Shown here in pieces: positions 7,701-64,000 of a DNA stretch of 64,000 nucleotides. The notes under the pieces were generated by a model, which was not told the DNA's origin, searched no databases, and worked only from the letters and a program-made list of their open reading frames with translations. The DNA is from Takakia lepidozioides (lineage: Eukaryota; Plantae; Bryophyta). Each line of letters starts with the position of its first letter. The stretch's first letter is position 1. Where the stretch lies: contig CM060734.1 of the NCBI GenBank assembly GCA_030704615.1, forward strand, positions 56,358,001 through 56,422,000. The letters run 5' to 3'. The translations under genes and the position numbers were made by a program.

Positions 7701-8391
7701 TTATGAAGTACAAACCAGGGAAGTCCAAAGATCACATGATTCGTTGGAGACTAGATGTCATTGAAAACAATCTGTGATGCTTGATTTTTAAACTTCATTT
7801 CAAGGGGTCGAGTTTCATGGTCAATATCTCCTGATGCTAACGGTCGTCCATCGATGACTTCAACAGGGGCCGATAATTTCTTTCTTACGAACGTTAAATT
7901 GTGTTGCTTCGCAAAGTCTTTCTCAATAAAACACACTGAAGCGTTCGAGTCCAAAAGTGCTTTTACGGAGATATCTCGATTTTGCATCCTGATCTTTACT
8001 GGAACTGTAAAACAAGATACACGGTCTGGAGGTAGAAAAAGATTTTATTTTTTTTAAGGAATTTGGGGGGTCCAGCCGCGTGGTCCCTACTATGACTGGA
8101 CATCTTTATTTTCCGACCTCCTCGTATCGAACACTTGAGTTGTGCCCCGAGCTTTGAATCTTCTCTTGTTGGGGCAGTTTAATGTTATGTGATCATCTTC
8201 TTCGCAATAAAGACATAATGCATTTGAGCGCCGTCTTTTGTTTTTCTTGTGGCGTCAATGGCTTGAAGCGGACAGCATCAATCTGCATATGATCATTACC
8301 GGATGTCTGATGGATCGTTGTGTTTGGTTCTTGCAATCTGGAGCTGAAGACTCTACAATGTGGCGACCATTTCCGCAAATGTGTCTTCCAT
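4750..8391 (-). pseudogene. gag-pol pseudogene with C-terminal chromodomain; most of gag deleted
   Basis: ORF fragments 7751-7987 (protease), 6711-7253 (RT), 5902-6786 (RNase H), 5417-5875 (integrase), 4784-4984 ([11 protein letters not shown]...VHWKGY). Multiple stops and frameshifts. Confidence 0.93.
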
Positions 8392-8412
8392 CTTAACTAA
8401 CTAAGGAACAAA

Positions 8413-8429
8413 CTTCAGTCTCGCCAAAC
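8413..8429 (-). promoter_or_regulatory. Self-priming (Tf1-type) primer binding site
   Basis: Minus-strand GTTTGGCGAGACTGAAG follows the LTR end and is complementary (14/15) to CTTCAATCTCGCCAA at 8720-8706, just downstream of the LTR TATA (8740-8747). Confidence 0.75.
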
Positions 8430-9044
8430 TATCAAGAACGAGAACATGATTGAACACAAACAAGAGATTAGACTAGAAGTACAAGACTATGCAAGAAGTC
8501 AAGGTCGGCGTGGTCGTATGCACGATGAGTGAATATAAATCAAGGCGATTTTTATAACAATGAACAAGGGTACAAGATATTGGAACGCGACTTGAATACT
8601 GGAATGCTGGAAACTGGACTGGAGTACCAGATACTGGAAACTGGGCTAACGTACTGGGAACTGGACTGGAATACTGGGAACTAGAAACAAGAGCTCCAAC
8701 TGGTGTTGGCGAGATTGAAGAGTGTTCAGTCTCGCCTCCTATATATACTGGCTACTAAGAAGCTTCCCTAAGAAGCTTCCCATATGGAGGTTTCTTGCTA
8801 GAGAAGTTTCCAAGATTAAACAAAAGTTTATTGATTGAGAAGTTTCCTTAAAGGAGGTATCTTTTATGGAGAAGTTTCTTCCAAAGCAAGCTTCCTGAGC
8901 AGTTTCCCAAGTTACTCTTGGTAATTTGGGAAACTCCCGGTAACTTGGTAAATTATGATAAATCATGGTAACTTTCAATAACTTGGTAACTTGATAACTT
9001 CTAGTATTTACTCTGGTAAGTTCCTCTGGGCTATGTCCGTGACA
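8430..9044 (-). repeat. 5' LTR (615 bp)
   Basis: Termini TGTCACGGAC ... GTTCTTGATA (imperfect inverted repeat), internal TATA, followed by the PBS and the gag ATG at 8391. Confidence 0.85.
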
Positions 9045-12000: not shown

Positions 12001-12464
12001 AAGGCTGAAGCAGGTATTCACAACGGCTCCAACACTGGTACATGCAAACCCATCTAAACCATTCTTTTTGGAAACAGATGCATCGGACTTTGCACTTGGC
12101 GCGGTACTCTTTCAATACGGTACAGATGGTCGACTTTACCCTATTGGTTTTCATTCTCGCAAATTTTCCGCTGCGGAGATCAATCATGAAATCCATGACA
12201 AAGAACTTCTAGCGATTATTGATGTTTTTGAGGAGTGGCGTCATCTATTGGAGGGAGCTAAACATCAGGTCACAGTCTATACCGATCACAAAAACCTCGA
12301 GTATTTCATGAGTGCTCGTGTTTTGAATCGACGTCAAGCGAGATGAAGTATGTCACTAGCAAGGTTTGATTTTGTTATTACCTACCGTTCCGGACATCTT
12401 CAAGGAAAACCAGATGCTCTTTCTCGACGATCGTATCTAGCGCCAAAAGAAGGGGATGCAGCTT
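9045..12464 (+). mobile_element. Truncated inverted copy of the same gypsy element (partial LTR, gag, protease, RT, RNase H)
   Basis: Reverse complement of 6129-8641 apart from indels. Gag with zinc knuckle CLYCGEDDYITLNC, LLDSGAS protease, RT and RNase H. Ends abruptly at GGGGATGCAGCTT. Confidence 0.93.
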
Positions 12465-33140: not shown

Positions 33141-33654
33141 ACCATACTCCGGGCTGAGTTCATGGCCATCTATGAAGCTCTCTCCCAATTATCTTCATTT
33201 TCCCCTCCACACTATTGCCACACTATATCTTTACGGATATGAGGGTAGCTCACGTGAGCACGCTCACGCTTAAAGTGGAAAACGTGAGCAGAATCCCTTA
33301 AGCGTGAGTAGATTAGTGAATGAAAGCCTACAACCAAGGGAAGAAGAGGGCCTATTGCCGTGGACAAAAACTACAATGCACGAACACATGCACACCCCAT
33401 CCGACAGGACAATCCAAGCTTCATGACGACCGTATGGCAGGGTTGTATACGTCAGTGACGTCACGTCACGTCGGACCTGACGCTGACGCGACCAACGTCA
33501 TGTCAGTTTTGCCGGAAAAATGAGTTAGGTGAAAAATATGCCACGTAGGTGGACACGTTGTATTCCAACGGACACCTTGGCAAGTGAATGAATTGTTTTA
33601 TAAATTACTCCATCCGCCAGTATTTGAGGTCATTTTTAAATCATTATTGTTAAA

Positions 33655-34200
33655 TTGGTGCGACCTCCAAATGTTGGTGGTCGCAGGTTTTATCTTATTT
33701 TTTAATAGTTGCGACCACCAGCAGAGGGGTTGTCGCAACATTTCTATTTTTTTTTAAATAGATGCGACCACCAGCAGGGATGGTCGCATTTTTTCCTTTT
33801 CTTAAACAGCTGCGACCACCGCTACTGGTGGTCGCACAATTTTTATTTTATTTGTAATAGGTGCGCCCACCATCAGGGGGGTGGTCGCAGCATTTTTCTA
33901 TTTTTTTAATAGGTGCGACTACCAGCAGGGGGGTGGTCGCAGCAATTTTCTGTTTTTTAATATCTGTGACCACGAGCATGGGGGTGGTCGCAGCATTTTT
34001 CTTCTTTTTAATAGGTGCGACCACCAGCAGGGGGGTGAGCAATTTTTTGGTTTTTAATATCTGCGACCACCAGCATGAGGGTGGTCGCAACAGTTTTTTT
34101 TTTTTTTAATAGGTACGACCACCAGCATGGGGTGGTCGCAGCATTTGTTAATTAATTTAAATAACATGCGACTTCCTCGTGCAACCTGGATCGGTCGCAG
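33655..34200. repeat. Left subterminal array of TGCGACCACC-n-GGTGGTCGCA hairpins separated by T-rich spacers
   Basis: About 11 units of ~50 bp. Confidence 0.9.
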
Positions 34201-34539
34201 CATTGGATTCTGATTCGTCGAGCGTGTGAGGCTTGGAGGCTGGAGGGTATATAAGGTGGTCACAATGCCCCTCACTTCTTTTGTGGAAAACACTTTTGTG
34301 GCGAGTAAATGTTCTCTATTCCTTGAGCAAGAGTGTAGCCCAAGAGGAGGGTGCGGACCGTTTGCTGTTGTGGCTTCTACCAGAGCCACTGCAGCAAATT
34401 GTCGAAAAGCACAATACTACATGGTGCATTGATCCACTTGGATTGATGCCGTAGTATTGGGCCATCGCATTCTGTTCTAACTTCTATTGTTCTTGACAAA
34501 TCTACCAAGTACACTAGTGTTCTTCGTTCAACCTTAAAT

Positions 34540-36740
34540 CTGTGGTTAAGGTTTTGGGTGTGAGGATAAGAGAAGAGTGGATCTCTTGGTTCACCGTAGA
34601 CCCGCACAAAAATAACGGTGTTCAATGCAATCTCTGTGCATTGAAGTTGGCGGGTCGCAAAGATCGCATATTATATCACCTCGGCTACAGAGATGGGAAG
34701 AATGCAGGGGTTAGTTTGTGCCCAAAAGCCTCCATGCGAGTGAAATCTCACTTTGCCCAATGTGAAGGCAATATCACACCGTCTCTTGATGTGGCCGCGG
34801 CTTTTGAGCCAAACACTCTATGTTCGAATCAAAAATGTCCATCAGAGTTGTACCTATGGGGATTCTTACAAGACGTCTGTTGTTCGTGGAGAAGCCGGTG
34901 GGTCAGGAGCAACACCCGATTGTACACCAACATTTATACGGACCAGACCATTGAGGCAACAATCAATGCAAGAAGGCTTAAATTTGTCGCACAGGAGGAC
35001 TCTGGATAAGAAGTGGGCCCAATTTTTCTACGAGGCCAATATTCCGTTCAATGTCTCGAGGCTTCATGCGTTTATGGCTACTATCAAAGCCACGGCCGAT
35101 TCCAAGTCCACATACACACCTCCGAGTTATCGCGATCTCCGCATAGGATTGCTAGAAGAGACTATGTCTGACCTCACCCAAAAAGTGAATGAAAAGACAG
35201 ATGATTCTCTCCGGAAATATGGAAGCACTATATGTGCGGACGGTTGGAGTTCTGTTACTAATCGACCACTGTTCAATGTCATGCTGGTCTGTCCTGCGTG
35301 GGAACAATTTTTGGGATCCGTTGACACAAGCGGGGAGATAAAATATGCACGTTATCAAGCAGGGTTGTGGACGAGATTCATCGATAAAATTGGAGCTGAT
35401 AAAATTGTCCAAGTGTGCACGGATAATGCATCTAACATGGTTAATATGACCGATATTTTGATGGTACGATATCCCCATCTATATTACCAAGGGCGTGTTG
35501 CTCATATCTTTGATCTCCTTTTGGTGGATTGTGGAAAAGAATCATGGATGAAACAACTAGTAAAAAGGGCAAAGTAGGTTGTGACGTTCATTCGTACATA
35601 TCACATCCCTCTAGCATTGTTTAGAAAGCATGAACCCAAATACAGCCTTAGGAACCCGGGTGAAACTCGCTTTGCCACAAACTTTTTGATAGTGGATCGA
35701 CCGGTGACTGTGATGGCGGGTCTAGAGCAGGTGATCATAGACCCTCAATGGGATGCGTATGTGGGCACCTTACGCGACACTCGTAAGTCCAAGTCTTTGA
35801 ACAAAAGTCGGAGGGTCTGCGCAATCATTCGCTCCGACGATTTCTAGGCGAAATGTGCAAATTTTGTGTACATGGTAGAGCCGGTGTTGATTGCTTTGCG
35901 GGAGTTTGATGGAAAACAACCAATAATGGATAAAACATGGTTGACATTGGAAAACCTTGAGAAGCACATGCAATCATTGAGGCGTTCTCCATTTTCTATG
36001 AACGATGATTTGGCGGCAAGGACCGAGGATGCATTTTACGACTGCAAACGGATGGTTCGCACGAACTTGCATTATGCGGGGGCCTTGGTGAATCCATTCT
36101 TGCTGGATAATACGGATTTGAGAAACGATGTGGATGTCAAGTCGGGCTTGTATAGGTCATCATACAACTCGCGCCCGTGACCATGGCAGAGCGAGTTTTG
36201 TCCGAGTACCAGTGCTTCTCGGATCGCCAGAATCTTTTTCATGACATGTCGGATCCAAAAGCAATGAACATGTGGTCACATGAATGGTGAGATCTAATTA
36301 GAGCTGGAGCAAAAATGTTAGCTCCCATTGCAAAACGTACTCTTATTCAAGTGTGCTCTACCTCGTCCTGTGAGCGGAACTGGAGCAGTTACTCGTTTGT
36401 TCACAACAAGATTCGCAACAGGTTGAATCCTGCCAGGGCTGACAAATTTGTTTATGTCTACACGAAATGTAGGCTACTGCGAGAGAGGACAGCAAGTGAC
36501 GCATCTGCATGGTACGAGAAGAATCTGTTGTGTGAAGAATCTGCCTCAAAGGTCCAATCTAGCAGCAATGATGACACTGACACCGCGAGGGACTCCGATT
36601 CCGACGGTTGGGATGGGTCCGATGATGCGGGCAATCCTCCACATGACTCATATGAATTTAATGATGATGCTGCTGCAATGCATCTATCCTTCGATGACCT
36701 TGTTGTTGATGAACTGCGACATGGTGTCATCTTGCACTAA
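34540..36740 (+). pseudogene. hAT transposase pseudogene (BED finger, DUF659-type core, C-terminal dimerisation region)
   Basis: VQCNLC...RILYHL, WAQFFYEANIPFN, ICADGWS, VQVCTDNASN, PGETRFATNF, LHYAGALVNP, SSCERNWSSYSFVHNKIRNRL. Several stops and frameshifts. Confidence 0.92.
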
Positions 36741-36989
36741 CAATTGTCATTTCACAGGCTACAATTGCAATTTGAGGGGTTGCAATTAAATTTCAGGGGC
36801 TTTAATTGCAATTTGAGGGGTTGGAATTGACAATTTCAAGGGCTCAAATTACAATTTGAGAGGTGGCCGGAGTTGGTCATTTTCGGGACTGGCATTACCA
36901 ATTTTAAGGGCTTGAATTGTATTTTGAATTGTAATTCAAGGTTTAGAATTGGCCATTGGGGGGCTAGAATTACCAAAGCTATGACATCC

Positions 36990-38270
36990 AAAGCAATATA
37001 AAATCATTTGATAGCGGAATGATTGGTTTACCCTTTCAACCATTTTTTATTCACGTCATACTTATCCGGTACTTGTAAGAGGGCATGTGGCTGACACTTG
37101 CAAAGCTTCAAAGCAATGTAAAATCATTTGATAGGGGAACAATTGGTTCACCCTTTCAACCATATTTTACTGACCTCATACTTGTCCGGTACCTTTAAGA
37201 TAGCATATGAAAGACACTTGCAAAGCTTTAAAGCACTAAAAAATCATTTGATATGTTCATGATTGATTCACCTTTTCAATCATTTTAGATTGACTTGAAA
37301 CTTGTGAAAGACCTGTAAGAAGGCATGTACAAGACACTTGCAAAATTTCAAATCAATTTCAAATCATTTGGTAGGGGGACGATTGGTTCACCCTTTAAAC
37401 CATTTTAGATTGATGTCATACTTCTCAAAGACGTGTAAGAGGGCATGTAGAAGACACTTGCAAAGTTTCAAAGCAATAAAATATCATTTCATCGGGGAAG
37501 TTTCCATTCACCCTTTCATCCAATTTTGAATTGAACTAGATTTTTACTAAATAAAATGATTTAGAGGGCATAGGATTGTGGGGCGCAATGGTGTGGGGCG
37601 CAATGATTTTGTTTTTGGCTTGATTTTGTTCTGTGAGTTGAACCCTCACACCACCACATCTTTGCCAAAAAATGTACCAAAGAAAAATGTTTGAAAAAAA
37701 ACGTTTATCCTTTGCTCTATGCTCACTATTGCAGAACTCTCTATGAAGAGTGCATGAAGTTGAAGATAACTTCACCTTGGAGTGCAAATGAGGGAATAAA
37801 ATGTGTTTTGGATGTAGACGATGTCTGTTCATGGTGATATTTTGCATGCAACTCTTCATGTTGTCATCAAGCATATGGCTTCAGAACGGAATTAAAAACA
37901 ATTCATGTGCAGGCGAAAGGTTGTTTCTCGTCTATACGACACGTACCTCCGTTATGAATTTGAATAACCCATTCAAACAACTTTATTGAAGTTCAACTTT
38001 GGTCCATATATGCATAAGTACGTACAAATCACATACACAAAGTTGCAAGCGAAGAGAAAATCATTTGCCCCCCGAACGACTCGTTAAACCTTTCAACCAA
38101 TTTTCAATCATGAATCATTTAATAGGGGAACTATTGGTTCACCCTCAGAACCATTTTAGATTGACCTCATACTTGTCCGGTAACTTAAAGAATGCATGTA
38201 CAAGACACTCCCAAAGTTTCAAATCAATCTAAAATCATTTGGCAGGGGAACGATTGGTTCACCCATTTAC
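36990..38270. repeat. 120-bp tandem repeat (about 4.5 copies at 36990-37530, further copies at 38040-38270)
   Basis: AAATCATTTG...GGTTCACCCTTTCAACC...AAGACACTTGCAAAG recurs at 120-bp intervals; ~500 bp of unrelated sequence interrupts the array. Confidence 0.85.
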
Positions 38271-40309
38271 CCGGTGTACACTGTCACTCTTCAAGATTCG
38301 TGGGTGTGGTGCTTGATTACCCCATATGATGGACCCAGGTGTCATGGCCAAGTAAACATTATGGTACGAGACAAACACAATTGAAAACAACATTTATTCA
38401 AACATGATGTACAGTTAGAGGTCATTAGAAAAAAACGAGGCAAAAGAAAGGCTGCTCCAAGGCGCATTTGTGCCCTATAGCCGCTCAAGGCGGGTACATA
38501 TTTTTGAAATGTACTTGAACGTCTACCGTGGCAAAATGGATGAATTCCACAGTGACGATGTTTCCACCGTGGCAAAATTATTTCCACGGATGACGTTTTG
38601 GCGAGGAGCATCGGCTTCTCGCGCGTTTCTTCCCCGCTTCTCGCGCGCGGCTTCTTCCCCAAGCTTATCTCGCCGTTCTTCCATCTCCTCTTGCAGCGCG
38701 TACTGCTTGCAATGTGAGCAACGTGAGTATCGTGCTCAAATCATTTTCGGTACAATTTCACAAGGCTGCCCAGCTGATGTAGAGCCACTGATGCTTGCAG
38801 GTAGCGTATGGCTTTGAAGTTGGGCTCGAAGGCAGCTACCCAGCAACCATAAGCTGCTGCCATGAGGGAGAAGTATCCAATCTGCTCGTTTTTAATCTTC
38901 CAGGGGTATTTTCTTCATCTTGTTCATCTTGAGTTTTACATTAGAGAACCGCAAGTCTTTAGGTGCATAGTTAGTGATGCCCCATGCAGCTGCAAACCGT
39001 GTATTCTGGTGCGCGACTAGATTTCGCTAGAACGGATTTTACCCGGCTATGTAGCTACCATTTATTCAACGCATGCTGCAGGTACCCTAAGGACGCTGAC
39101 AAAGTTCTGTTAGCCAAGCAAATTGGTTTGATATGAAGCCAGGTAACATTTCATCGCAGAGGGTTTCTTGCTTGCGCTTGACAATGAGGTGTATGCTTGG
39201 GTTTCTGTCTGCCAAGGCTGAGTGAGTAGCTTGCTAAGCGAGCCAGCGCCCTGCTTGTGTCCGCTGGGAAGCAATCCTCGGCGCTCGTCGGTGACCTTAC
39301 CGCAATGTTCGATGCACACCAACATACATGTGATCACAACAAGGACTTCAGAGAAGATCGGAGAACTGACCTTAAAGAGAACAAACTGAGTTCACATAAA
39401 TGGGCCTCTTGACTGGTATGTGTAGAATAACTTTGTGGTTGAGCTTCATATTCAGAACCACGTTGTGTGGCACTAATGCATTTGACTATGGCTCTGTATG
39501 GAGACTTTGGCTCTGGATTTGACTTTGGCTTTGGCACTTGTATGCAGGAGCATTTCTAACAGCGAAGTACAGCAATAGATCCACCACAGTTGCTGCCGCC
39601 ACACTGAAGCAGGTCTGTCCTTACTCACAGCTCGGTCTTCTCTTCAATAGGTACTGACAGATAGGTACTGATGGGTAGGTACTGACAGCCATAAGAAATC
39701 CCTTTGACACTCATTCTAGTCAGAATGTAGTCAGAATGGGAATTTTCTGGATCTGAAAACAGTGGATCAGTGTAAACATCGAGGGACCCTTTCTCTGTAC
39801 ATTTTCTCTACAAGGGGCATCTAAGACAACCATTTCTTCAGATGCGAGAACGGAGTGTCACATGATGAGTCGTGCATTCATGGATGCAACTCGGAGTTCC
39901 AGGAGCTGGAGGCAGTACCAACTGCAGCTATTGTGCAAGGTCCACTGGAGCCAGCTGTAGCAGTTTTCTCTCCTTTGCCGGAGGTCTCTGATGAGCCCCT
40001 CGAACTCTTTTCCACTGTAGGTCAATTTTTGACAAAGTCTCCATCTCTGCTTTTGCTTTTATCTTCCTGTAGTGGAGTGTTACAAACTGGAGTTCTGGGT
40101 GATGGCTTCAAGGTGAGGTTAAGCAGATTCTTGGAGGTACAGTCCCCCCTTCCCTCTTCTCTTCTCTCTGGAGATTTTCTCTACAAGTACAAGTTAGTTT
40201 GATGATGGTTGCTATGGTTGAGAAATGATTTGTGTAGTGTTTTTGTGTGGAAGCAGAATGCAGTTCGTGTGAACAACACCGAATTACCACCAACAACAGA
40301 CTCACGGCC

Positions 40310-41853
40310 ATTAGGAGGACGGTGATGAGGCAGAAATCATTCATGCCCAAAAGCTGGAAAGAGTGAGTATTACCCTCATGAACCGTGCATTAGACCCATC
40401 CGTCACTCCGGATAGTGAAAAGTTTTTCAGTGTGCAAAGTGAGAGGGAGATTTGGCCTATAGCTTGTTTTCAAGTGGCAAAGGAGAACACAGAGGTTCTA
40501 AACTGGGTGTTCCAACAAACCAAACTTCCTTCGTTAATTTCAAGCCCAAGAAGATGGGCAACTTCTTCACGTCCCTGCAAATAGTTTGCATTCTTGCATG
40601 CATTGCATGCAGGAGAGAGTCAAGTCTGTAGAGGGGTCCATGAAGGATGCCGCCATTGCTATTAATAAGCGTTCCCATACATGGAATGGAGGCTTATTTG
40701 CCCAAAACATTACTGCCAAACCGGTGAGTGGGAGTCAGGGAAAAGATCGTTGGAAACCACTGTTGCCCATCCCCATTGAGAGAGTGCATATTTGCACTTT
40801 ACATGCCATGAATAGGATCATTGAGAAAATGGTCCACCTCCATTTCATGTTCGTCTGGACCATTCGCGATAAGAAATTACAAGAGTTAGCTATTGCTGAC
40901 ATGGAAAAAGTGTTGTCCAGCACTGGTGCGCACGGTGGTTTGGTTAAGATCATGAAAGATGATCAACTGTCTGGCAAACTGAGTAATATCCCCAACAAAC
41001 CTTCGTTCAGTGGCCCACATGCTGCCAAACTCTTTAAACCGAGTACTTTAGAGGGAGGCTCCGACAAGTTGTACATTGATGTGGTAAAGTCCGAGCACAA
41101 CCACACGGAAGATGGGGCAAGTAGGAGAAATCGATTAGCATGTTGGGTTGCATTTGATAAGTTGAGCCCCTATCTTTCTGGCCTTGCACTCACCAGTGGA
41201 CAAATAGCTGAATATAAGAAATGTGTGGAGGAATTTGGACGCGCTTTCATCAAGAGTTGGGGGGAGGGTCCAGTTACACACTATATTGTGAGTATCTACA
41301 ACATCCCTTGATATTGATTGGAATGCTTATAGTAAAATTTTGCATTTCAATCATAGTACTTATAGATGACAATGCCAATTGTTCAAGTTGATTGGAATGC
41401 TAATTGTTTAAGTTGATAATTTGCAGCACGTACTGGTCAAGCACACCCCATGGTTTGTTGAAAAGTATGGAAGCCTATCTGTCTGGTCATGTCAAGGAAT
41501 GGAGAACTCGCATCACGCGGCAAATGCGGCATATCAGCGTCATACTCAACATGCTGGAACAAAATGCAAGAAAAGTCCTTTGGTATAGACCTATCAACAC
41601 TGGTTTAGGATCATTCAACATAGGTTCAGAAACAAAAACCTTCAATTGAATGTTGCCATTGATAACCTTAGAGGTGAGGAGGCAATTCAGGGCCCGACGT
41701 GCAGCATCCTTAAACTCAAGCGCAACAGCACACAGCGCTTTGTGGCGATCAAGATGCACTCGGGTTGGCAGTAGGTGGGTACCAAACTCTGAAGAGCCAA
41801 TTGTAGAAGAGCCAATTGAGGAATCACCGGAGGAGCCAATTCATGCATTGTAA
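40310..41853 (+). pseudogene. RAG1/Transib/Chapaev-like transposase core, spliced (intron 41288-41426), disabled
   Basis: Motifs in RAG1 order: WPIACFQVAKE; ANSLHSCMHC (CxxC); HICTLHAMNRI; VTHYI|HVLVKHTPWFVEKYGSLSVWSCQGMENSH (compare RAG1 [33 protein letters not shown]). The second catalytic Asp region appears deleted; there is an in-frame TAG. Confidence 0.75.
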
Positions 41854-43802
41854 ACAACACTTGCTACTACTTCCTATGGTTGTTTTGCTTATGTTGTTTT
41901 GCTTGTTTTGTTTTGTTTTGTTTTGTTTCTTTCTGTTTTGTTTTTTTGGTTGAACAGGGGTTCCACGAGGGTTGATAACTCTGCCCTTGCTGTGGCTGTA
42001 GGTGCCAGCATCATGCGTTGCGAGCTGACAAAACTGCGATGGAACCAAGCCCAGGTCCTGCAGGTGTGCACATCTTCAGCATCTGCCTTACTCCTCAGCA
42101 TCTTGCATGTAAACACAAGCTACCTACAGACCTATGACCTGCAACATTAGTACCTTATCAACAACTGAACATCATAGCCTGCAGGCAGCTCCCTCATGTT
42201 GTCATGTTGCCAGAAGGCCTAGTGCAACTTGTGTCCCTATCTTATCCCTAAACTGCAATGGAACCAAGCCCAGTTCCTGCAGGCCTTACTCATCGGAAAG
42301 GAATTAATTCTGTGGCTGTGGCTTGCCTCCACACCAAAGGAGTTAGCAAATGAGCAGGGTAGACAGGGGCAGACTCAGACTGAAAGCAAAGAAATTGCTC
42401 AACTAGTCATCCCATTGACAACATCTCCATCAGACCATAGTCTGAGATCTGCCCTGTCTATAAAAGGTAAAGAATGGTGAAAAGAAGGAGGTTACTCACT
42501 AGGGCAGACTCAGACTTGCTTTGACTTCTCAGCAGATTGATTATTGAGGGCGGGCGGAGGCGAGAGCGGGCAGATCTCAGCAGATTGGTTTCAGGTCATA
42601 CTTGGGGCGGGATTTCCTTGATCGATACAGTCAGGGCGCCTTGAGAGTGCAGTCTGTTGGCACCAGTCTGTTGATGGAGGTGAAGAGTGCAGCATGTTGA
42701 CAGTGGATAATCGTAGGCGACCATGCACCTCATGAAAACGAATTTGAATCGGTGATTCGAAGCACCGCCGCGAGGTCGTGTTTAGGGATCGACTGCCTCT
42801 GTTCTGCTGGGGGCTCCTGTAAGTCTATCAGACATGCTGCCATCATACAGCGTATTATTAATGGATCTTCAGTTGAAATGGACTAGTAGGGCTAGTGTGT
42901 TTCGTTACCCTACTCTCCATGGACTTGATGATTACAGCATCTTAAGCAAAGATCTTTCAGCACTTGACCACATGACAATAAACTGGAGGGAGGAGAGTAA
43001 TGTTACCCTGGTTCTAGAGAGAGAGTTTTCTTTGATGTGACCTTTACCCATCTTTTTAATGTTCAACCATGCAACTACTCGACTCCAACCTGTCATGTCA
43101 TTGGCGCATTCAAACCCAACTTGGCCCGGCATGCTCCAGGATCTCTGCCAAGCATGATGAGGAAAGCACTGCTCGAAGGACAGCACCGCTCGAAAGAACC
43201 TCCGCTCTGAAAGAACCTTTCATCTCCTGATGCGCAGAACTGAGCCTAACTAGTATGAACCTGAAGCTGCAGCCGTTGCCGCATGCGCCACATCCTCTGC
43301 CCCACAGACATACTAAGCGCCTGGACTTGCTGCTCAGGGGGGGCGGGACAACATTCTCCCTCCCTAAAAGTCCGCACACCTCTCCCTCTCTGTATTACGG
43401 TGTAAAATGGAAGCACGGATAGAGAAACAAGACCCCAGATCAATCTGTGTACCCAGCCAAGACCCAAACATCCATCCATTCAATCTCATCTGGAAAGTGC
43501 AACTTGACTAAACTGGAGCTTAAAATTGCATTAAGCATTAAGTACAAAGAAAGTTACAAGTACTTTCCAAGAGTCTATCCTTTTTCTTTTTTATGTTTTG
43601 GTTAAGTACAAATAAAATCAATCTGTTGCTAATGGATCATTACAGCATTCTTGGTTACCATGGCATCCCCCATCATTATATCAAACACAAGATCCTGGGT
43701 TCGAATTCTAAATATTATTCGCTCGACAAAAGTAACATTTTTGGTCATACCCCCTTCTCCATGATTGTCCCACTTAGCCACAAGGTCTAGGGTTCAAAAC
43801 AT

Positions 43803-43968
43803 CACATAACAAAGGTTAAAATGTCACCTAAAATGTCACATAATGTTATCCTAATGCTCCATAGCCCTAACTCTCAACCAACAAACATCATACTATTCAC
43901 ATAACAAAGGTTAAAATATCACCTAAAATGTCACATAATGTTATCCTAATGCTCCACAGCCCTAACTC
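43803..43968. repeat. Tandem duplication, 95-bp period
   Basis: CACATAACAAAGGTTAAAAT...GCCCTAACTCT at 43803 and 43898. Confidence 0.9.
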
Positions 43969-44055
43969 TAAGACTAAATGTCACCAAATGTTCCAGATGT
44001 CACCATTATCTTGTAGCCCACGGACTAACCCTAATTCTAAGGCTACACATCAGGA

Positions 44056-45434
44056 TTAATTTGCCACAAGTCGTAGTCGTTTCAGAGGCAGCACATGGGC
44101 AGCTGTGTACTTCTTCTCATTTCTGATGTTTACCTGTCAACAAGAAACATGTAATTTTGTCAGAAGCTGTCATAACATTTGAAGCTGTGAATGGATGACC
44201 ATTTCACATACCAAATTCCACATACCTTTTTGGACTTGATCCCATCCTCATCCACCAAGATCGTGAAGTCCTCAGGAATGTCTGATCCAAAAGCAATCGC
44301 AATCTCATGTCGAATGCTTGACATTGACCACTGTCGCCCAACCTCAATTTCTTGTTGTCTTGCTTCATATTCACAACATAAGCTGACCATCTCCACAGAC
44401 TGAACCTGATCCATCGTCTCCCATTTGTTTTCGGATATCGTGCGTTGCCGATTGAATTGAAATGTGGCATATAAAGCAGATCGGCCAATGTGATATTTGA
44501 ATCTCAGTGTTGAACGATCGACAACACATCTAATGACATCTGCTCCAATGGTGATTTTTGTATCCCATCCACTATCCATCAGTGATTCCAACAGCTTCTC
44601 ACATGGTTCTTTGAAAGTGAACATGGTATAGCTCTTAGAGATACTGCTGGCCACGGAAAATAGATCTACCATTACTCCAATTGGCATAAACCATTGTAAG
44701 TGGGTTGATTTGCTTCCTGTTCTGGGTTTCATAGAGGATAAGAAATCAGACCGCAACTTAAGTCTGAAAGACTCACTGGTCGCCATGTCCGGTAATGGCC
44801 AAGCTGGGTCACTAAAACCAGGAAGAGGGATCGGCTGCACTGTTCCAAACTCGGATCTACCATTGCGTGGGGTGTAAAATGCATTGTAGAAGTACACATG
44901 ATCGCGCAGAAGCTCCTTGTGCGTTCAATTTCCACGGCAAGCCTCACCCACTTCGGCGTGCACCACATACAAAACGTCCATTATACTCTTCGGATCAATC
45001 CAATCTTCAAACGTGGAAAGGTATAGGTCTGCAATAAAACCCCATCCTCATCGTATAGTTGTTCCACTGTGCACAATACAAGGTGAACTTGATAGCAAAT
45101 AATGTAAATTTATGAGGATCTTAGACAACTTACAATTGCAAGCGCCTATGCCAGGAGGATAATTGAGTTGTCGTTGCATGTAAGCATGTTGAACACAGAT
45201 TTTGGATACCACTGTGGATCCACCTTCGAAACGAAACTTCAGCACCTTCGCCTTGTACGCCCCCTCTGTTGTAGAAGTTCCGCCGTGCTTCAATGAATCT
45301 TTAGCATGATCGCCTTTTCTACCCGACATCAATGCTACCCAAGCATTACTCTCCAACTTCATGGGAATCCAATTATCATTCTCGTCTTTCGAATTGAACA
45401 AGATCACAGATCCTACTTCACTTCGTGGCCGCAT
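44056..45434 (-). pseudogene. 3-exon gene with BAH-like N-terminal region (exons 45434-45134, 45028-44226, 44133-44056); one in-frame TGA
   Basis: Two in-phase GT-AG introns. YKAKVLKF...VQHAY...NYLYLSTFEDWIDPKSI...YFYNAFY follows the BAH pattern; domain call is by eye. Confidence 0.6.
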
Positions 45435-46249
45435 TTTGTTTCGGATTCACAATTCCCTCTGTATCCCACCAAGAAATCAACTTACGATTTGGAATGAGAT
45501 TTGGAACACGAGATTTGGATTTGCAGCTTTACTGCACTTGTCTGCTTAAGCAACAATTGCTAACTAGTACCTGTCAACCTACAAGTACTAAGGTAAATTG
45601 AGGGTCCACGAGCTGGAGTCTCTTGGGCATCAAATAAACTATTTTTCCCACTAAGTGGCCATACCAGTGGCCGCCTCACCCAACCTATGCTCCTGATATG
45701 TCTCTTGGATAGTTGGATTTAGCACAAGTCAGATTGGATATACTTCAAAGTACCGTACGAAAGGTTCAGCATTTGCTTTTGCAGGGTGGGGCAACTGGGT
45801 TCCTCCAATCCCAGGCTGTTGCAAAAATGATGTTTGAGCATTTTGCTGGACAGCTTTGTAGGCTGGTCTGGTTTGACTTGCATACCCAAGTAGACTCTTA
45901 TCCATGATGACCTTAGTTATGTAGCAATGATTTTTCTATCAAATTGCAGTGATTGCGACCTTGGAATTGGGAAAGGGAAATCCATTTTTGGGTAATCCAG
46001 TTGTGAACCAGACCAGCTCAGCCCAGCTCAGCTCAGCCAGCCCAGCTACCACTTGATTTTTCTGTCAATTTGCAGTGATTGCGACATTGGAATTGGGAAA
46101 GAGAAGTCATGTACTCTTAAAAAGAGACTTTCCCTCCTGAGTTTTTCAATCCTTACAACATCAGTTTATTTTATTGTATCAGTTTATCAGATCACGAGCC
46201 TGAACATTGGAATACAACATTAAGGTAGATGCTGAAAGAGGATTATCAC

Positions 46250-46330
46250 CTTCTTTCCGCAGTTTAGTCCAAGCTGCTTCAAAACTGGTAGTGAGCTGGT
46301 CAAACACAGCAGCTCTTGTTTTCAACAGCC
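46250..46330 (-). pseudogene. Captured fragment of a chloroplast SRP54 (FFC)-like exon
   Basis: TRAAVFDQLTTSFEAAWTKLRKE followed by a GT donor; resembles the cpSRP54 N-domain start (MFGQLT.GLEAAW.KLKGE). Confidence 0.55.
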
Positions 46331-46689
46331 CACCTCTGAGCCCTGTCTACCCTGCTCATTTGCTAACTCCTTTGGTGTGGAGGCAAGCCACAGCTTAGTA
46401 CAGACTCAATCATCTATGGCCTGCAAGAGCTCAAAGCTTTAACTTCTGAGTCTCTGGCTCTTAGTGGCAACCCCAGGAACCCCAGATTGATTTGGTAAGC
46501 AATGTAGTAGGTTGAATCCAAGCTCAATCCATATGAGCAACCCTCTAAGGCATATAGCCACCATACTGAAACTACGACACCTACAGTCAAACCATCAACA
46601 ACATAGCCAAGAAAATGAAGATAGAAGGCAACTGCATTCCTTGTTCACCTAAGAGTGGCCTTGGCATCAGCAGCTAGAGTCCACAAGCG

Positions 46690-46915
46690 TGATTCCAAGT
46701 GTTGCACACGCACTGCAAATGCACACAAACATGATGTGGTCGAGCTTCACCCCTTCCGGCCCCGTCATTTGTTCATAGGTCTCCAAAGCCCCATCCCACA
46801 CCCCTGCTCTGCACACCCTGCAAGCATCGCGTTCCATGACACCACATCTCGTTCAGCTGTGCATCTCGGCCTTTGTGCTTGTGCTCCTGCATAGCGTCTG
46901 CAATGTTGCCCTTGC
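46690..46915 (-). pseudogene. Captured PLS-type PPR gene fragment
   Basis: ERDVVSWNAMLAGCAEQG..GALETYEQM..EGVKLDHIMFVCICSACATLG, with frameshifts. Confidence 0.8.
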
Positions 46916-47269
46916 TGGACCCATCTCCTGGTGCCACTGACTTCAACAGCAGGCTCAGTAGGCTGCCCATCACCAACAATGACGTCAGCCAATCTAATTT
47001 AAGCTCTCCCCAATAATCTCTCCTCTGCCACATACTCTCCATTCAAACAAAGCGTCAAAGTCTCTCACATCAAGAAAATGCAATGTCATGGAACAACATA
47101 AAACCTGGGGTGAATGAACTGCCTACCTCATGTAGCACACGGCCAAGCTTCAGGTAATCCAGAAAACCAGTTGCCCATGCAAACCAAATATCTGCTTCTA
47201 CAATTCTCACCCAATCAGGAGGCAAATTACTTATGGAAGACTGAAAACAGTGAGGGTGAGGGGAAACAC

Positions 47270-47365
47270 CTCTGTCCATAGAGAATGTTCAACAGTTCAA
47301 ACAGCTCAGCATCACTGGCCAGCTCCAGTACAAAGTGTAGCTCTGGATCAAATGCAGCTGCATGC
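47270..47365 (-). pseudogene. Captured exon fragment of a conserved plant protein of unknown function
   Basis: AAAFDPELHFVLELASDAELFELLNILYG followed by a GT donor; recalled as resembling a conserved plant/cyanobacterial YaaW-like family. Confidence 0.45.
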
Positions 47366-47858
47366 ACCAAATGAAATTTAGGGCAAGAACATAGGGACGA
47401 CCTCTCCAAGGTGTGAAGGTGCCCTGGGGCTTCCACTGTTATGTGCATGTGATTCAACCTGTTGCTTGAACTCCTCTGAGTTGTAGGCTAGAAGAAGTAG
47501 GTGACTTTGACTTCATAAGCTCCAGAAGAAACCCACAGCCTTGCCAAATCTGACAAAAAATGATGAGTCACAATGTTGCAGAACTTGGACCAACGTACTC
47601 ACATTCGGTGAGTCCATGGTTGCAATATAAGCGAATGAAAAGCAAACATTTTGAGAGCGAGCACCTCAAGTCTCAAGCAGGGACACCATCGTTGCCTGCT
47701 CTCGGAGCTTTCATTCTCAAAGACAGTAGCAATCGGATGGCTGATAAATAAAACCAAGCTTTACGGTTTCTGCTTATATTGACAAAGTCTACCCTCTAGT
47801 TTTCAAGGAGAACAAACCTTGTGCATATATTACTGATGAGCATTCGAACGTTGAACAG

Positions 47859-48000
47859 GCAAGAAGAACTCTGCGTACCTTGAAAGGGTTGGTGCGGCTG
47901 CAAGCACTGGTGCGGGGCCACACAGTGCGAAGGCAGGCTGCCAGTACCCTGCGGTGCTTGCGAGTGTAAGCTCAAGTGCGAGCACGCCGTGTTCGAATGT
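47859..48000 (+). pseudogene. Captured IQ67-domain (IQD) exon fragment
   Basis: After a CAG acceptor, [44 protein letters not shown]; starts at the phase-0 intron position typical of IQD genes. Confidence 0.88.
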
Positions 48001-48924
48001 GACCTCCTGCATTTCCTGCTCCGTCCCTCGTCGTTCCATTAACTCCCTGTTATCCCGATCATTCTCCCATTTCCTGTCAATACTCAACCATGATCGTATG
48101 GTCCCCCCATTCCACCAATATGTGTAACCTTCATTTCGACGTGGATGCAACGCAAAATACTTTATGATGCCGAAATGATGGAACTTTACAGCCAACGCCT
48201 CATTGTTAGGTTGGACTTTGACAAGCTCAGCATTTGTTTCCCTGGGCGTTTTCCCTGCTAGCTCCCAAGATGGAGGAATGAATTGATCCCCAACAATTCT
48301 AACCCTCCGAATTGTACTATACCCTCCCTGTTTGGGCGCGTCGAGTTGTTGTACATGTGCGTTTATGGATATGTATCTCACGTTCAATGCCGCATCCGCG
48401 GACGAGGCCCTGTCTTCCATGGGAGTGGTTTCGTACATCATTTGGCGTGGGCCTTTGCCATGTCAGACCACCAATCCACAAAGCACAAACAACTCCTCCT
48501 CCGAAGTTGGCATGCGACCTTCAGCTACAGGTGTTCTCGTAACAAACTTGTCCATGGTTTGCCTCAGATTCCATGTGGCATCATGGGCCCGGTCCTCCAT
48601 CCATTTCGTGAACTGGAACTTTGCCATGTCCTCCTCCCATTCATCCCCGGCCAAAGCCTCCCTCATTCTCATCTCCATATTGTGCTGGAATCTAATGAAC
48701 CCCTCATTCCCATGTCAGACATACAAAAGATTCAAACGCATTATGTCATTGTCCTTCAAATAATCGAGCACTACTTGTTTCACCACCTTCGCGGCCTCTG
48801 TGCTTGGATAGTCTTTTTTGTTGACCTGACTATCCCGTTCATATGCATGTTTACGCTTCCTACCTTTACGCCCACTTCCCGAGGAACCCCCTGACACTGC
48901 GTTCGAAGCAATGTTTCCGGACAT
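48001..48924 (-). pseudogene. Protein kinase-like gene, truncated after the N-lobe, two in-frame TGA
   Basis: One frame across ORFs 48715-48924, 48463-48678 and 47830-48441. QGGYSTIRRV, LAGK, NNEALA, HHFGIIK and WWNGGTI correspond to kinase subdomains I-V. Confidence 0.65.
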
Positions 48925-49289
48925 GATGAAAGTACTTTGCGGAATAGACGCGGCTTCGTATCGGAAAACTAAACCCAGACTATTGATAACCTTATATACT
49001 AGCGGACCAATTTCCTCACCCTCTCTTGGTATAGTACCTAAAGCAAACTCTCTCCCGTAGTCCTAGGAAAAAAAAAAAAAAAAAAAAACTCCTCCCCCAC
49101 ATAAATCCACTTTCTCCCCCCCCCACGGCTCAGTCCTGGCCACCGAAGTCGAAACTCCAAGAAGCCCCAGAACCGCACTCACAGAGAGGGAAAAAAATGG
49201 GTTGGGAATGGGGGGTAAGCCCTTATATACTGCCTTGAGCGTCGCGTGACCGCCTCTGCTGCCCATTCGCGCTTCGCCACGTGTCCAGG

Positions 49290-49730
49290 TAGCGGTCGCA
49301 CCTATGGGTGGTCGCAGTTAATAACAAAACAAAAAAACAACTGCGACCCCCCCCTGCTGGTGGTCGCACTTTTTTAAAAACAAAACGAAAATGTTCGACC
49401 CCCCATAAGCGGTCGCACCTAATAACAAAAAAGAAAAAGTCTGCGACCACCACTAGCTGGTAGTCGCACCCATTTAAAAAATAATTAAAAATGTGCGACC
49501 ATCCCCTGCCGGTGGTCGCACCCAATTTAAAAATAAAAATAAAAATGTGCGACCACCCTCTGCTTGTGGTCGCACCTATTAAAAAAAATGAAAATGTTGC
49601 GACCATCATCTGCTGGTGATCGTACCCATTTACAAAATAAGAAAAAATGTGGGACCACCCCCATCTGGTGGTCGCACCTTTTAAAATAAAATAAAAATGT
49701 CCGACCAACCGTTGCTGACGGTCGCATGAT
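49290..49730. repeat. Right subterminal array of TGCGACC/GGTCGCA hairpins with A-rich spacers
   Basis: Mirror image of 33655-34200. Confidence 0.9.
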
Positions 49731-50339
49731 TGACAATATAAATCATAATATATGAATTTTATAGATAAATAATGAAGTCCACGTAATGAGGCCACATCGG
49801 TTGCCACGTTGGTTCTCATAGTAAATAGTCAATAGTGAAGTAAAAAAATAAACATATTTATGTACAGTAACGTCCGTTTAGGACGTGACGTGACGCACGT
49901 CCGTCGCTGATGTCGGACGTGACGCTGACGCGCACGTCACGTCCAAATTTGCAACTAGGCCGTATGGTACGAATGTGTGATGCAAAAACCGATGGATGAA
50001 TGGTTTCAGGATGAATGAAAAGTGGAAAGGATGAATGGTGGATGACTTGTGGATGAGAAATGAGCGAAATGGATGAACCATGACTTCGTTTTTGTTTCAC
50101 GTGGAGCAATTGCATCTCGAGTGTGTCCTGAATTTTAGATTTGTCGGCTGATCCTGGCAGTACTTACTTTGAGGGAACTTGAAGGAAACTGCTGAAGTTA
50201 CAAGGCAATTACATACAGGAGTAAATTTGAGTTACCTATGGATTCTTCTGATGGGGAGGTGGGGCTGCAGAGGAGGGAGGAGGATAGAACATGAGAAGTG
50301 GAGGACAAAACAAAATCGCAAAAAAATTGAGTCCAAAAA

Positions 50340-55479: not shown

Positions 55480-56671
55480 CAGCTGGAGAAGCGGGCAATT
55501 GATACTTTTGAGAAATCACTGCTGGACTACAAGATCACAATGACCACTCTGAGCATCAAGTTCCAATCGTACGTTCAGAAATGGAGAAGAGAGCTGTGGA
55601 AGTTTGCATTTTTTCGTGAGTTCGAGAAAGAAGGGGGCATTTTGCGCTCGTAGGACTTCGACCATCAGTATAACGGGGAGCAGGCAATGAAACGAGTTCT
55701 ATACAGGTACTACCTTTTATGGTGATGGCACTACATTAAGATGTTGTTGACGACATCTTAAAACAGGCATTGTCTATAGTGCAAATAGCAATTTTTCGGT
55801 ACTAAACACAGAATTCCATGTATGAAGTGGGTCGATTTAAGGTGGCATTGACGACACATTAAATCGGTGCCCTTTGGGCTCTTCAAAACTGAACAGTTGT
55901 ACACATCTATTTCTTGTTTGTCTGCAGGTCTTCATTGTTTTGTTGTGCTTTCTGCAATTTAAGATGTCGTCAACGACATCTTAAAATAGGCATCCTTTTG
56001 TAGTCCAGCAAGTCATTTTTCATCAGACAACGAAAAAATACCATGTGCGTAGGGGTCGATTTAAGATGGCGTTGATGACATCTTAAATAGCTGCTCTTTG
56101 GGCTCTCGGAAACAGTTTCGTTGAGCATGTCTGTTTTCTCGTGTTCTGTAGCTCTTCAATTTTTGTTCAAGTTCTTGGAGTTTAAGATGTCGTCAATGAC
56201 ATCTTAATGTGTAGTCTGCAAATCTGCAGTGTTCTTGTGGTCTGTGGGGATATATGCTCTGAGGAGGAACACTTGTGTGGATGCAGGTACATCCACTTCG
56301 TTCTTATTCCAGATAAGACTCTCAGTGATGATCCGGACTTCATTCGTGGATGGGCGAACCCAGACGACGACACCACTATGTTCACTATGGGAATTGTGAA
56401 GGACTGGGGTCGGGCTCATTACCGCGACTGCGGGTGGTACCTCGACTGCCCGCAGCAGTCTACTCCGTGGGAGGAGAATGTCTTGAGGAATCAGAATGAG
56501 AATGCAGATGCCTTGGCACCCCGGACAGATGAGGAGTTGCAGGCTAGGTTCATTGCGCAGCTGAGTAAGAAGGAGCCAGCAAAGACAGCCATCCCCTCGG
56601 GTGGGAAGAAGAAAAACAAGGGAAACAGACTGCGGAGGCAGGTGGGTCTACCGGTGATGCGTTGTCGTTGA
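55480..56671 (+). pseudogene. Truncated paralog of the middle exons of the 59295-64000 gene
   Basis: LEKRAIDTF...KWR...FF.EF.KEG.ILRS*DFD and KDW...RDCGWYLDCP...LAP.TDE match 61061-61288 and 62211-62570. Confidence 0.75.
55735..56210. repeat. Intronic array of TTAAGATGTCG-TCAA/TTGA-CGACATCTTAA palindromes
   Basis: Five copies (near 55736, 55837, 55958, 56061, 56182) within a ~222-bp tandem unit; one more near 57035. Confidence 0.88.
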
Positions 56672-62200: not shown

Positions 62201-64000
62201 TCTGTGCTACTTGCATCTTACTCACTTCACGCTTTGGTGGGTTGGGATTTATCTCCTGTTTAACAAGTACACGAAATATGTGCTTATGGAAGGAAATCAC
62301 CTGAGCGGTATTCCAGACTATCTTGACATGTGGTCGGACCCTACAAACGATCCAACCAAGTATACTGCAGGGATATTGAAGGACTGGAGTCCTTCTCACT
62401 TCAGAGACTGTGGCTGGTACCTTGACTGCCCACCGGAGCACACGACCTTTCAAGAACAACACATGAAATATTTGAACAATAATGTTGAGATGTTGGCGCC
62501 TCTGACTGACGAGCAGTACCAAAGAAACATAGCAACATTGGCTGCCAAGGAGCCTGATGCTCAGGAAACGCCGCAGAAGGGAAAGAAGGCGGGCCGCAAA
62601 CCAAAAGACAAGGCTCTTGATGTCATAGCCATCTCACCAGCAAAGCCAAAGGACAAAGACAAGTCCAAAGAGAAGGAGAAGGAAAAGGACAAGGGGAAGG
62701 AGAAAGAAAAGGAGACGGAGAAGAAAAAGGAGAGTGGGCAGGACTTCACTGCTGGAAGATATACCCGCACAGTTCAGTGCGTGTTCGATGCCAAGCCACA
62801 CCCTTCCCGTTCTGATTCGGCAGGAGAGATTAAAATTGTCAATGAGGGTTGGCTGGCGATGATGTAGAGTCGAAAGAGAGGATACACTGGGGTGCCTTCG
62901 CCTACCTGGGACAACATAATCTCATTCCTCAATCTGGTGAGAATTCCAATTTCTTTCCTTTTTCTCTGAAAGTTTCATTGGCAGTATTTCAGTCTGGTTC
63001 TTTGAAAACATTCTTGCCATCGTTCTTAAAATAAATATGTCTGTTGCAGGTGAGCACTGGTCCCACCTTCGTGTGCGGTGTGCAGAAAACATATGCGGCT
63101 GACATTGTCATTCTCGACATCCCGGATGGCCAGGCTGTGCCAGAAGTTCTTCCAAAGGGCAAGACACCAGGCTGGAACAAATTCGAGGACAACTACTGGA
63201 GTTGGGTGTCCGGGTTCTGTAATAATTTCCTTTTCTGATGCAGGGACACTTCTGCTTTTTCAGTCATGTGACAAAGATAGTCGTCGGGCATTGGCATCAT
63301 ACCTGAAGTCTTCAAGGTTTGAAGTTTTGCGCACATGGAATTGTGTTAACAGCCTCTACCTTGTGAAAGGGGGTTTCCCTGGTCAGCTGGTATGTCGTCT
63401 CCCTTCTGCTTGTGCTTTCATGATGAGTTCAATGTTCTCTGCAGCTCCACTCTAGAAGAATCTGTCAAGATCGACACCGATCATCCCCGATTCGTGATAA
63501 AAATGATTGTTTTATGCCTGAGTTCTGAATAGCCGATGTACACACTTCCACTATAGATTGTGTTTACCACACTAACCTGCTATCTTTGGTAAACGAGGAT
63601 GTTCGAGGCGATCTACCTGTGGAGGATTCGCACCTCAAAGACACCATCCTCCATCCGCAGCTTTGAGATTTCTGACCAGGGTTGTTTTGTCAACCCCCCC
63701 CTATGAGCCCCATGTCGATGACATTTTGTACAACTTCATGCAGTCTAGTCAGACTCTGAAGAGACCAGATGGCACTCCTTGGAGAGGTGCAAAGGAAAAA
63801 TCCCCAGCGTTCATGCAAATACTGCTGGAGCCCCCCCCCCCCACCAAACTGTTCATGTCCTCATGTCTGGTGCAGGAGCAACTTGCCATGCATGCAAGGC
63901 AGGCGGAAGAAGCCTTTTTGGCATGGAGGGTGATTCTGACCTCTACAACACAGTGCTCCTCCCCCTTTTGTCTGGCTCCACTTTAGGCACACAGACTGAT
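59295..64000 (+). pseudogene. Multi-exon gene ending in a beta-class DNA amino-methyltransferase (N4C/N6A)-like domain; disabled, runs off the window
   Basis: Exon-like segments near 59295-59600, 60245-60454, 60539-60975, 61061-61288, 62230-62880, 63050-63390, 63600-63830 and 63876-64000. Motif IV-like ADIVILDIPDG, then FL.DAGTLLLF, PWRGAKEKSPAFMQILLE and GATCHACKAGGRSLFGMEGD. Frameshifts present; the first half of motif I appears missing. Confidence 0.65.
61368..62142. repeat. Intronic array of GAATGTCG-TTGA-CGACATTC palindromes in a ~320-bp tandem unit
   Basis: Eight copies (near 61370, 61492, 61603, 61698, 61812, 61919, 62014, 62122). Confidence 0.88.

Follow-up and report, generated by a model that had tools for sequence, protein, structure and literature searches.

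A probable remnant of a RAG1-type transposase gene, carried within a hAT element of the moss Takakia lepidozioides

Introduction

RAG1 is the enzyme that shuffles the antibody genes of vertebrates. How it arose from Transib-like transposons is a long-standing question, for which sampling beyond animals is sparse. A 64,000-nucleotide (nt) stretch of the Takakia lepidozioides genome (assembly GCA_030704615.1, contig CM060734.1, positions 56,358,001 to 56,422,000 of the forward strand; hereafter the window, numbered from its first letter) raises this question for a moss. An earlier sequence-only reading proposed that a gene from a plant lineage of RAG1/Transib/Chapaev-related transposases lies near 40–42 kb of the window, hidden by an intron. 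Is there such a gene, to which family does it belong, and what carries it?

For plants, 39 Transib-like proteins have been reported, with angiosperms as the species listed (Capsicum, Hordeum, Corrigiola, Juglans, Silene and Arabis; Tao et al. 2022, Natl Sci Rev, PMC9435367). They share with the present locus the claim of a RAG1/Transib relation in Viridiplantae, a comparison made here by description and not by sequence.

We consider it very likely that window positions 40324–41781 are a truncated, broken and still transcribed remnant of a RAG1-fold DDE transposase gene. This judgement is a joint one. It covers the remnant, its assignment to a RAG1/Transib-type lineage of plants and algae, and its place as a passenger in a hAT element.

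Gene layout and splicing

In tblastn searches, homology to the family spans 40324, the codon of the first catalytic Asp, to about 41781. The sequence-only reading had given the span as 40310–41853; the gene itself stands, with its start corrected to 40324 and its end to about 41781. The open reading frame (ORF) at 41650–41853 is in another frame and lies outside the transposase gene. The parts of the fragment are listed below, where P0153 is a homologue covering the first Asp to ZnC2 and A1 is the alignment of the family.

40324 to 40545, plus strand: first part, RNase H-like core; Asp codon 40324–40326, then ERVSITLMNRAL and QSEREIWP...KE
40546 to 40594, plus strand: frameshift and deletion site, from three-frame translations against P0153 and A1
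40586 to 41287, plus strand: exon 1, ZnC2 to pre-ZnH2 helical region; open frame ending ...GEGPVTHYI
41288 to 41426, plus strand: spliceosomal intron, GT..AG, 139 nt, phase 0, directly before the H937-equivalent codon
41427 to 41585, plus strand: exon 2, opening with HVLVKHTPWFVEKYGSLSVWSCQGMENSH; H-x4-H (41427–41429 and 41442–41444) and catalytic Glu (41502–41504) in GMENSH
41586 to 41588, plus strand: premature in-frame TAG, particular to this copy or allele; homologues have Gln
41589 to 41771, plus strand: C-terminal tail in the same frame (TYQHWFRII...), closing at a stop

P0153 and the exon of L001, a locus in a related element described below, match the first part over residues 5–78 with 58–59% identity. 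Exon 2 is 68% identical to L001 exon 2 (E 5e-27), and 41716–41781 weakly matches the L001 C-terminal ORF (E 0.003; all tblastn). The counterpart of the C-terminal tail in the homologue P0017 is PLQQMSFWFYRRV. Upstream of the splice, the reading had pointed to CxxC and CTLHAMNR. We find these motifs as CxxC at 40595–40606 and HICTLH at 40787–40804 (H 40787–40789, C 40793–40795, H 40802–40804).

The intron is bordered by GT at 41288–41289 and AG at 41425–41426. Logan contigs of the public runs X1, X3 and X5, which come from one organism, were aligned to 38500–42500. Contigs of all three runs contain the joint 41287>41427, with the 139 nt skipped between GT and AG and at most 158 nt on the shorter side. 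A single contig of 1155 nt joins 40295–41287 to 41427–41584. The spliced product reads VTHYI joined to HVLVKH...GMENSH. The proposal that an intron at 41288–41426 hides the gene is thus borne out, both by its borders and by spliced contigs in three runs. The runs resemble transcriptome assemblies, as their contigs show numerous canonical GT..AG joints and alternative splice sites. Transcripts of the locus, or of a near-identical copy, are present, with the conserved intron of the family correctly removed.

Downstream of exon 2, two alternative GT..AG joints occur, spanning window positions 41581–42001 and 41770–41998. The donor at 41582/41583 overlaps the TAG at 41586, and the stop is therefore skipped in some transcripts.

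Homologues and the conserved intron

The exons of the window were searched separately, and natural homologues resembling complementary DNA (cDNA), P0017 and P0035, bridged the junction. Exon 1 has 158 protein homologues among 1.84 billion representatives (phmmer; best E 9e-68), 89 of them at or below 1e-10. Most are ORF fragments out of genomic contigs. Around 35 independent ORF calls end right after THY(I/M/V), followed by a Val (GTN) codon and then junk, and the cDNA-like members P0017, P0021 and P0035 continue through the junction into H-x4-H...GMEKSH. From the shared break-off point and the members that read through it, we conclude that the phase-0 intron is old and conserved in the lineage. 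Its position is the same in L001–L004. One cluster (P0058) has among its members fragments whose names point to transcriptomes of Pyramimonas and Prorocentrum; therefore, the family is present in marine algae as well.

The order of motifs in A1 is constant: LKLDE, ERVSLTLMNRAL, QSE.EIWP..KE.H, VEWHLAGDLKTLKC, CxYC, IPLxRVHICTLH, KPSxxG and VTHYxHILxAHxPW...GSLGxW..QGMEKSH. The catalytic D-D-E is kept in the family. The first Asp, in LKLDE, is present in 12 of 13 sequences; the second, in VEWHLAGDLKTLKC, in 19 of 20; and the Glu of the last block, which phmmer aligns to RAG1 E962, in six of seven. Intact homologues had been expected to keep the zinc ligands and the catalytic triad, and A1 shows conserved columns for D, D, E, CxxC and H-x4-H. 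A word-indexed homologue search with P0017 and A1 added few proteins and gave no bridge to annotated families. In the literature searched, no intron-bearing lineage was described for mosses or for green algae. This intron-bearing plant and algal branch of the RAG1-type family is apparently undescribed.

Sequence and structural kinship with RAG1

Three kinds of sequence comparison point to RAG1. The clusters nearest to exon 1 by protein language model carry RAG1_ZnC2 and RAG1_ZnH2 (score 0.96, 181 shared features). Among 37 members of the family, no Pfam family but PF12940 (RAG1) is matched by more than one; two members match it, at E 0.003. A phmmer search of P0017 against all PDB sequences returned 15 matches, all of them RAG1 (E 0.0024). 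Here thyiHilyaH...gmEksh of P0017 aligns with nyfHktlaH...gnEsgn of RAG1, which places the conserved residues at H937, H942 and E962. Single sequences spanning the region from ZnH2 to the Glu were needed to reach RAG1 in the PDB, and P0153 gave nothing meaningful there (phmmer). No Pfam match was obtained with the window pieces.

Structure prediction against RAG1 and Transib structures had been proposed as a check. We ran it on the full-core homologue P0167 and on exon 1 of the window, and RAG-family chains are the top matches in both cases. The AlphaFold model of P0167 has a predicted local distance difference test (pLDDT) score of 70 overall and above 80 for residues 130–480. In Foldseek it has 49 matches at E ≤0.001, all to RAG1, BbRAGL or HzTransib (best 3e-9); the next match is Hermes, at 3e-3. 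In VIA-align, its residues 100–501 map to RAG1 505–979 (4wwx_B; Z 19.2, root-mean-square deviation 3.8 Å over 348 residues), and Z is 17.8 for BbRAGL, 17.8 for HzTransib, 11.2 for the P element and 8.9 for Hermes. In this predicted structure the core appears in the order pre-RNase H, RNase H, ZnC2, helical insertion, ZnH2 and C-terminal domain.

The AlphaFold model of exon 1 has a pLDDT of 85.5. In an exhaustive VIA-align comparison with 48,161 chains, the top six are all RAG-family: BbRAGL (Z 9.7), zebrafish RAG1 (9.3), mouse RAG1 (9.0, 8.8 and 8.4) and HzTransib (8.0). An unrelated chain follows, with a Z of 6.0. Foldseek likewise has RAG1 as the best match for exon 1, at an E of 0.57 that is not significant. 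Residues 2–234 of exon 1 map to mouse RAG1 726–936. The CxxC is therefore located at C727/C730, and the intron lies just before H937. Structural mapping and phmmer agree with the equivalents of C727/C730 and H937/H942/E962 that had been proposed for the locus.

The putative zinc ligands matching C727, C730, H937 and H942 are the CxxC at 40595–40606 and the H-x4-H at 41427–41444, in which the spacing of the His residues is identical to that of RAG1. An algal subfamily (P0167 and P0143) has neither Cys; P0167 has lost both His residues and P0143 the second one. This joint loss fits a single zinc site shared by the four residues. The length of exon 1 that aligns with RAG1 and BbRAGL is about 175 residues (171–178), compared with 122 for HzTransib. 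The long insertion is therefore retained in the lineage. It has been lost from Subgroup II Transibs, and ancestral "Subgroup I" Transibs were proposed to keep the α11–α12 region (Tao et al. 2022, PMC9435367).

RAG1 and BbRAGL (ProtoRAG of amphioxus) thus share with the lineage the order of core domains, D-D-E, CxxC and H-x4-H at equivalent positions, and the long insertion between ZnC2 and ZnH2 (exon 1 aligns to RAG1 726–936 and BbRAGL 833–1034). In RAG1 the catalytic Glu also lies within a G-x-E motif. In contrast, identity to RAG1 and BbRAGL is only 11–18%, and no RING or Chapa-type N-terminus was detected in the plant and algal lineage. Its genes carry spliceosomal introns, are multi-copy and are borne on mobile elements. 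No RAG2-like Kelch partner was found; the genes have a different, unannotated partner instead. HzTransib (Helicoverpa zea) shares the fold and, like the lineage, has its gene in elements bounded by terminal inverted repeats (TIRs), but the aligned insertion domain is shorter. The core of the lineage would have the RAG1/Transib architecture, in which pre-RNase H and an RNase H domain with D-D-E are followed by a long helical insertion framed by a CxxC...H-x4-H zinc site.

Related elements and the CMC alternative

Mapping the boundaries of other copies had also been suggested. Four copies are present in the ENA assembly ERZ25073694 (loci L001–L008 on four contigs) and are 96–98% identical. Their transposase exons have 44–47% protein identity to those of the window. 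Each element is about 19 kb long and has precise ends, 33-bp imperfect TIRs beginning CATTAGAAAAC (CATTAG). From the left end to the start of the RAG1-like gene is about 640 bp. Both ends are mapped in all four elements, and no target-site duplication (TSD) is present in any of them. Tandem repeats occur inside these elements, as do several more ORFs that have no Pfam match.

Transibs are marked by 5'-CAC termini, which resemble the heptamer of the recombination signal sequence (RSS), and by a 5-bp TSD. CMC elements (Chapaev, Mirage or CACTA) have a 2–4-bp TSD and CACTA termini. Neither pair of marks is present in the related elements, which differ from Transibs further in their size and in the introns of their genes. 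They thus give no support for membership of Transib in the strict sense. For this reason, "RAG1/Transib/Chapaev-related", the wording of the sequence-only reading, is the right level of claim; it is supported by the language-model neighbours, the RAG1 matches in Pfam and the PDB, and the two structure models. The relation is supported at the level of a RAG1/Transib-related fold and active-site layout.

Several observations weigh against our assignment. The RAG1 Pfam matches score 15.8–16.1 bits, under the gathering cutoff of 25. The A1 profile (307 well-populated columns) had no match among PDB sequences, RAG1 included. Termini of CATTAG and the missing TSD of the related elements are unlike those of Transib. 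The ESM Atlas fold neighbours consist of unnamed Streptophyta, Mucoromycota and Rotifera clusters, RAG1 clusters and one CACTA-type cluster (Transposase_21) with a similar template modelling (TM) score (0.52). On the side of transcription, the runs that show splicing carry only guessed "RNA?" or "DNA?" labels. A few bases distinguish the contigs from the window, which points to possible alleles or near-identical paralogues, and the spliced contigs may represent such paralogues and not this exact locus.

An alternative is that the family belongs to CMC and that its likeness to RAG1 reflects a deep kinship of the two groups. Chapaev has been placed as distant clades of the Transib superfamily (Kapitonov and Koonin 2015, PMC4411706). 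A DUF1280 cluster stands beside the Transposase_21 cluster among the Atlas neighbours. The PDB matches include no CMC structure, and their ranking may for that reason fail to separate CMC from RAG1; the missing CAC termini and 5-bp TSD would suit a CMC element. However, CACTA, Transposase_21, Transposase_24, DUF4218-type and other transposase families of Pfam gave no match in the 37 members at E up to 1, whereas RAG1 was matched twice. The only sequence signal from the PDB and Pfam is RAG1, with H-x4-H and the Glu exactly aligned. When normalized by target, the TM score is 0.64–0.67 for the RAG1 clusters and 0.41 for the CACTA cluster. The TSD and termini of CMC (marks taken as general background) are also absent from the related elements. 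We therefore regard CMC membership as improbable and keep the RAG1/Transib-type assignment.

Lesions of the window copy

The copy had been described as dead, with its second Asp missing. Its lesions confirm this. The N-terminal ~450 residues of the homologues (P0165, P0025 and the L001 exons at 8047–9880) have no match in the window by tblastn. About 27 residues, including the second Asp (VEWHLxxDxKTxKC in homologues), are deleted between ...QLLHVP and ...SLHSCMHC. At this site the tblastn matches to P0153 break off at residue 78 and resume at residue 112 in a different frame. The TAG at 41586 interrupts the C-terminal part; the base at 41586 is C in contigs of X5, X1 and X7 and T in those of X3. 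A further stop, at 40312–40314, lies in the frame of the first-Asp segment. The D-D-E of the window copy is incomplete, as the first Asp (40324–40326) and the Glu (41502–41504) are present and the segment of the second Asp, kept in nearly all homologues, is deleted. The copy is confirmed dead as a transposase, though transcribed. It is a fossil without transposase function. Cut-and-paste activity is beyond it: it has lost the N-terminal DNA-binding part and the strand of the second Asp and has acquired a frameshift and a premature TAG.

Transcription and correct splicing of the locus, or of a near-identical copy, could also be expected of a functional domesticated host gene. This is highly improbable. 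Homology starts only at the first Asp, the stop at 40312–40314, the frameshift, the deletion and the TAG interrupt the reading, and the locus lies within a hAT element beside a partner pseudogene with two stops.

Enclosing element and neighbourhood

No Transib-type ends had been spotted around the fragment, and it had been suggested that it might be an integral gene of a larger element. The larger element is instead a hAT element, and the RAG1-like fragment, which lacks element ends of its own, is a truncated passenger in it. The assignment follows from the flanking 8-bp repeat and the hAT transposase remnants.

33430 to 49967, strand not assigned: 16.5-kb hAT-type element enclosing the RAG1-like fragment and the partner pseudogene
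39839 to 40315, plus strand: upstream exons, 39839–40016 and 40257 onward, spliced onto the fragment in a chimeric transcript
44160 to 45434, minus strand: partner pseudogene with two in-frame stops, from tblastn of L003:19082–20128 (E 2e-90)

The direct repeat CCGTATGG is found at 33430–33437 and 49960–49967, as an 8-bp TSD. The TIRs, which start at 33438 and 49959, are weak (about 7 of 10 bases). Remnants of a hAT transposase at 34.5–36.7 kb match DUF659 (E 5e-31) and Dimer_Tnp_hAT (E 7e-4) in Pfam. The subterminal regions are rich in ACGTCA/GACGTG repeats. A search of the window for the TIR motif of the related elements gave chance-level matches only.

The upstream exons bear no likeness to the N-terminus of the family (tblastn of P0165, P0025 and the L001 exons). 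Their joints are GT..AG, at 38904>39081, 39139>39545, 39609>39839 and 40016>40257, with alternative sites. Contig depth over the short exons at 38904–40315 is much above that over the transposase fragment. Some contigs share 39840–40315, or the sequence up to 40324, and then diverge at 40315 or 40324; their continuations are absent elsewhere in the window. The upstream exons are therefore foreign to the gene, and the locus is a chimera with its breakpoint at the first Asp. The exons at 38904–40315 probably come from another repeated or host gene that was fused to the fragment. As we picture it, the fragment and its broken partner gene would be passengers of the 16.5-kb hAT element, fused behind unrelated exons and still transcribed and spliced.

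That the fragment is animal or otherwise foreign DNA, from contamination or a recent horizontal arrival, is scarcely credible: Transibs are best known from animals, and at least one reported plant case is on a 3.6-kb scaffold (Capsicum chinense; Tao et al. 2022, PMC9435367), but our fragment sits in a hAT element, the 64-kb stretch around it also contains retrotransposon remnants, it is found in runs of four studies, three of which (one organism) show its introns spliced out, its intron position is common to dozens of diverged copies, and its relatives lie on contigs of 0.3–0.66 Mb, where L002 and L004 also bear F-box or peptidase genes.

Elsewhere in the window, 5417–7253 and 9825–12346 hold Ty3/gypsy-type pol and gag remnants in opposite orientations (from ORF translations only). 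The ORFs at 56207–56671 and 62211–62867 are paralogous, share ...DWxxxHxRDCGWYLDCP... and lie in a second repeat-rich region; by tblastn they have no relation to the RAG1-like family.

Partner gene

The partner pseudogene lies about 2.5 kb downstream of the RAG1-like fragment, on the opposite strand. A 349-aa ORF found in the related elements is 45% identical to it (BLASTP, E 2e-67). In L003-type elements this ORF lies about 8 kb downstream of the RAG1-like gene, on the same strand, and the unrelated Logan contig L010 has the same layout of transposase and partner. Three diverged lineages (the window, L003:19082–20128 and L010:10001–11360) thus each pair the RAG1-like gene with a conserved partner of about 350–410 aa. 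Its family has 41 clusters in public data and no match in Pfam, PDB sequences or Atlas features.

In vertebrates, the long insertion between ZnC2 and ZnH2 is the region that binds RAG2. It is conceivable that plants and algae carry a two-gene RAG-like transposon, in which a RAG1-fold transposase and a conserved partner of ~400 residues, with no sequence relation to RAG2, would move ~19-kb elements and leave no target-site duplication. Such a pair would have arrived independently at a partnership like that of RAG1 and RAG2. We offer it tentatively and, taken as a whole, lean against it.

Conclusion

By analogy with RAG and Transib, intact relatives of the window copy would cut and paste their elements through a nick, a hairpin on the flanking DNA and strand transfer. 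Residence in plants and algae, a conserved intron, a zinc site of the RAG1 type, the long insertion, a partner gene and ends unlike those of Transib together widen the known range of the RAG1-type fold. Surveys of plant transposons based on Pfam miss this family, as none of the window pieces or the 37 members reached a Pfam threshold, those of PF12940, PF26100, PF26101 and PF26104 included. The lineage is a testable system for asking whether the requirement for a partner and the hairpin chemistry are ancestral.

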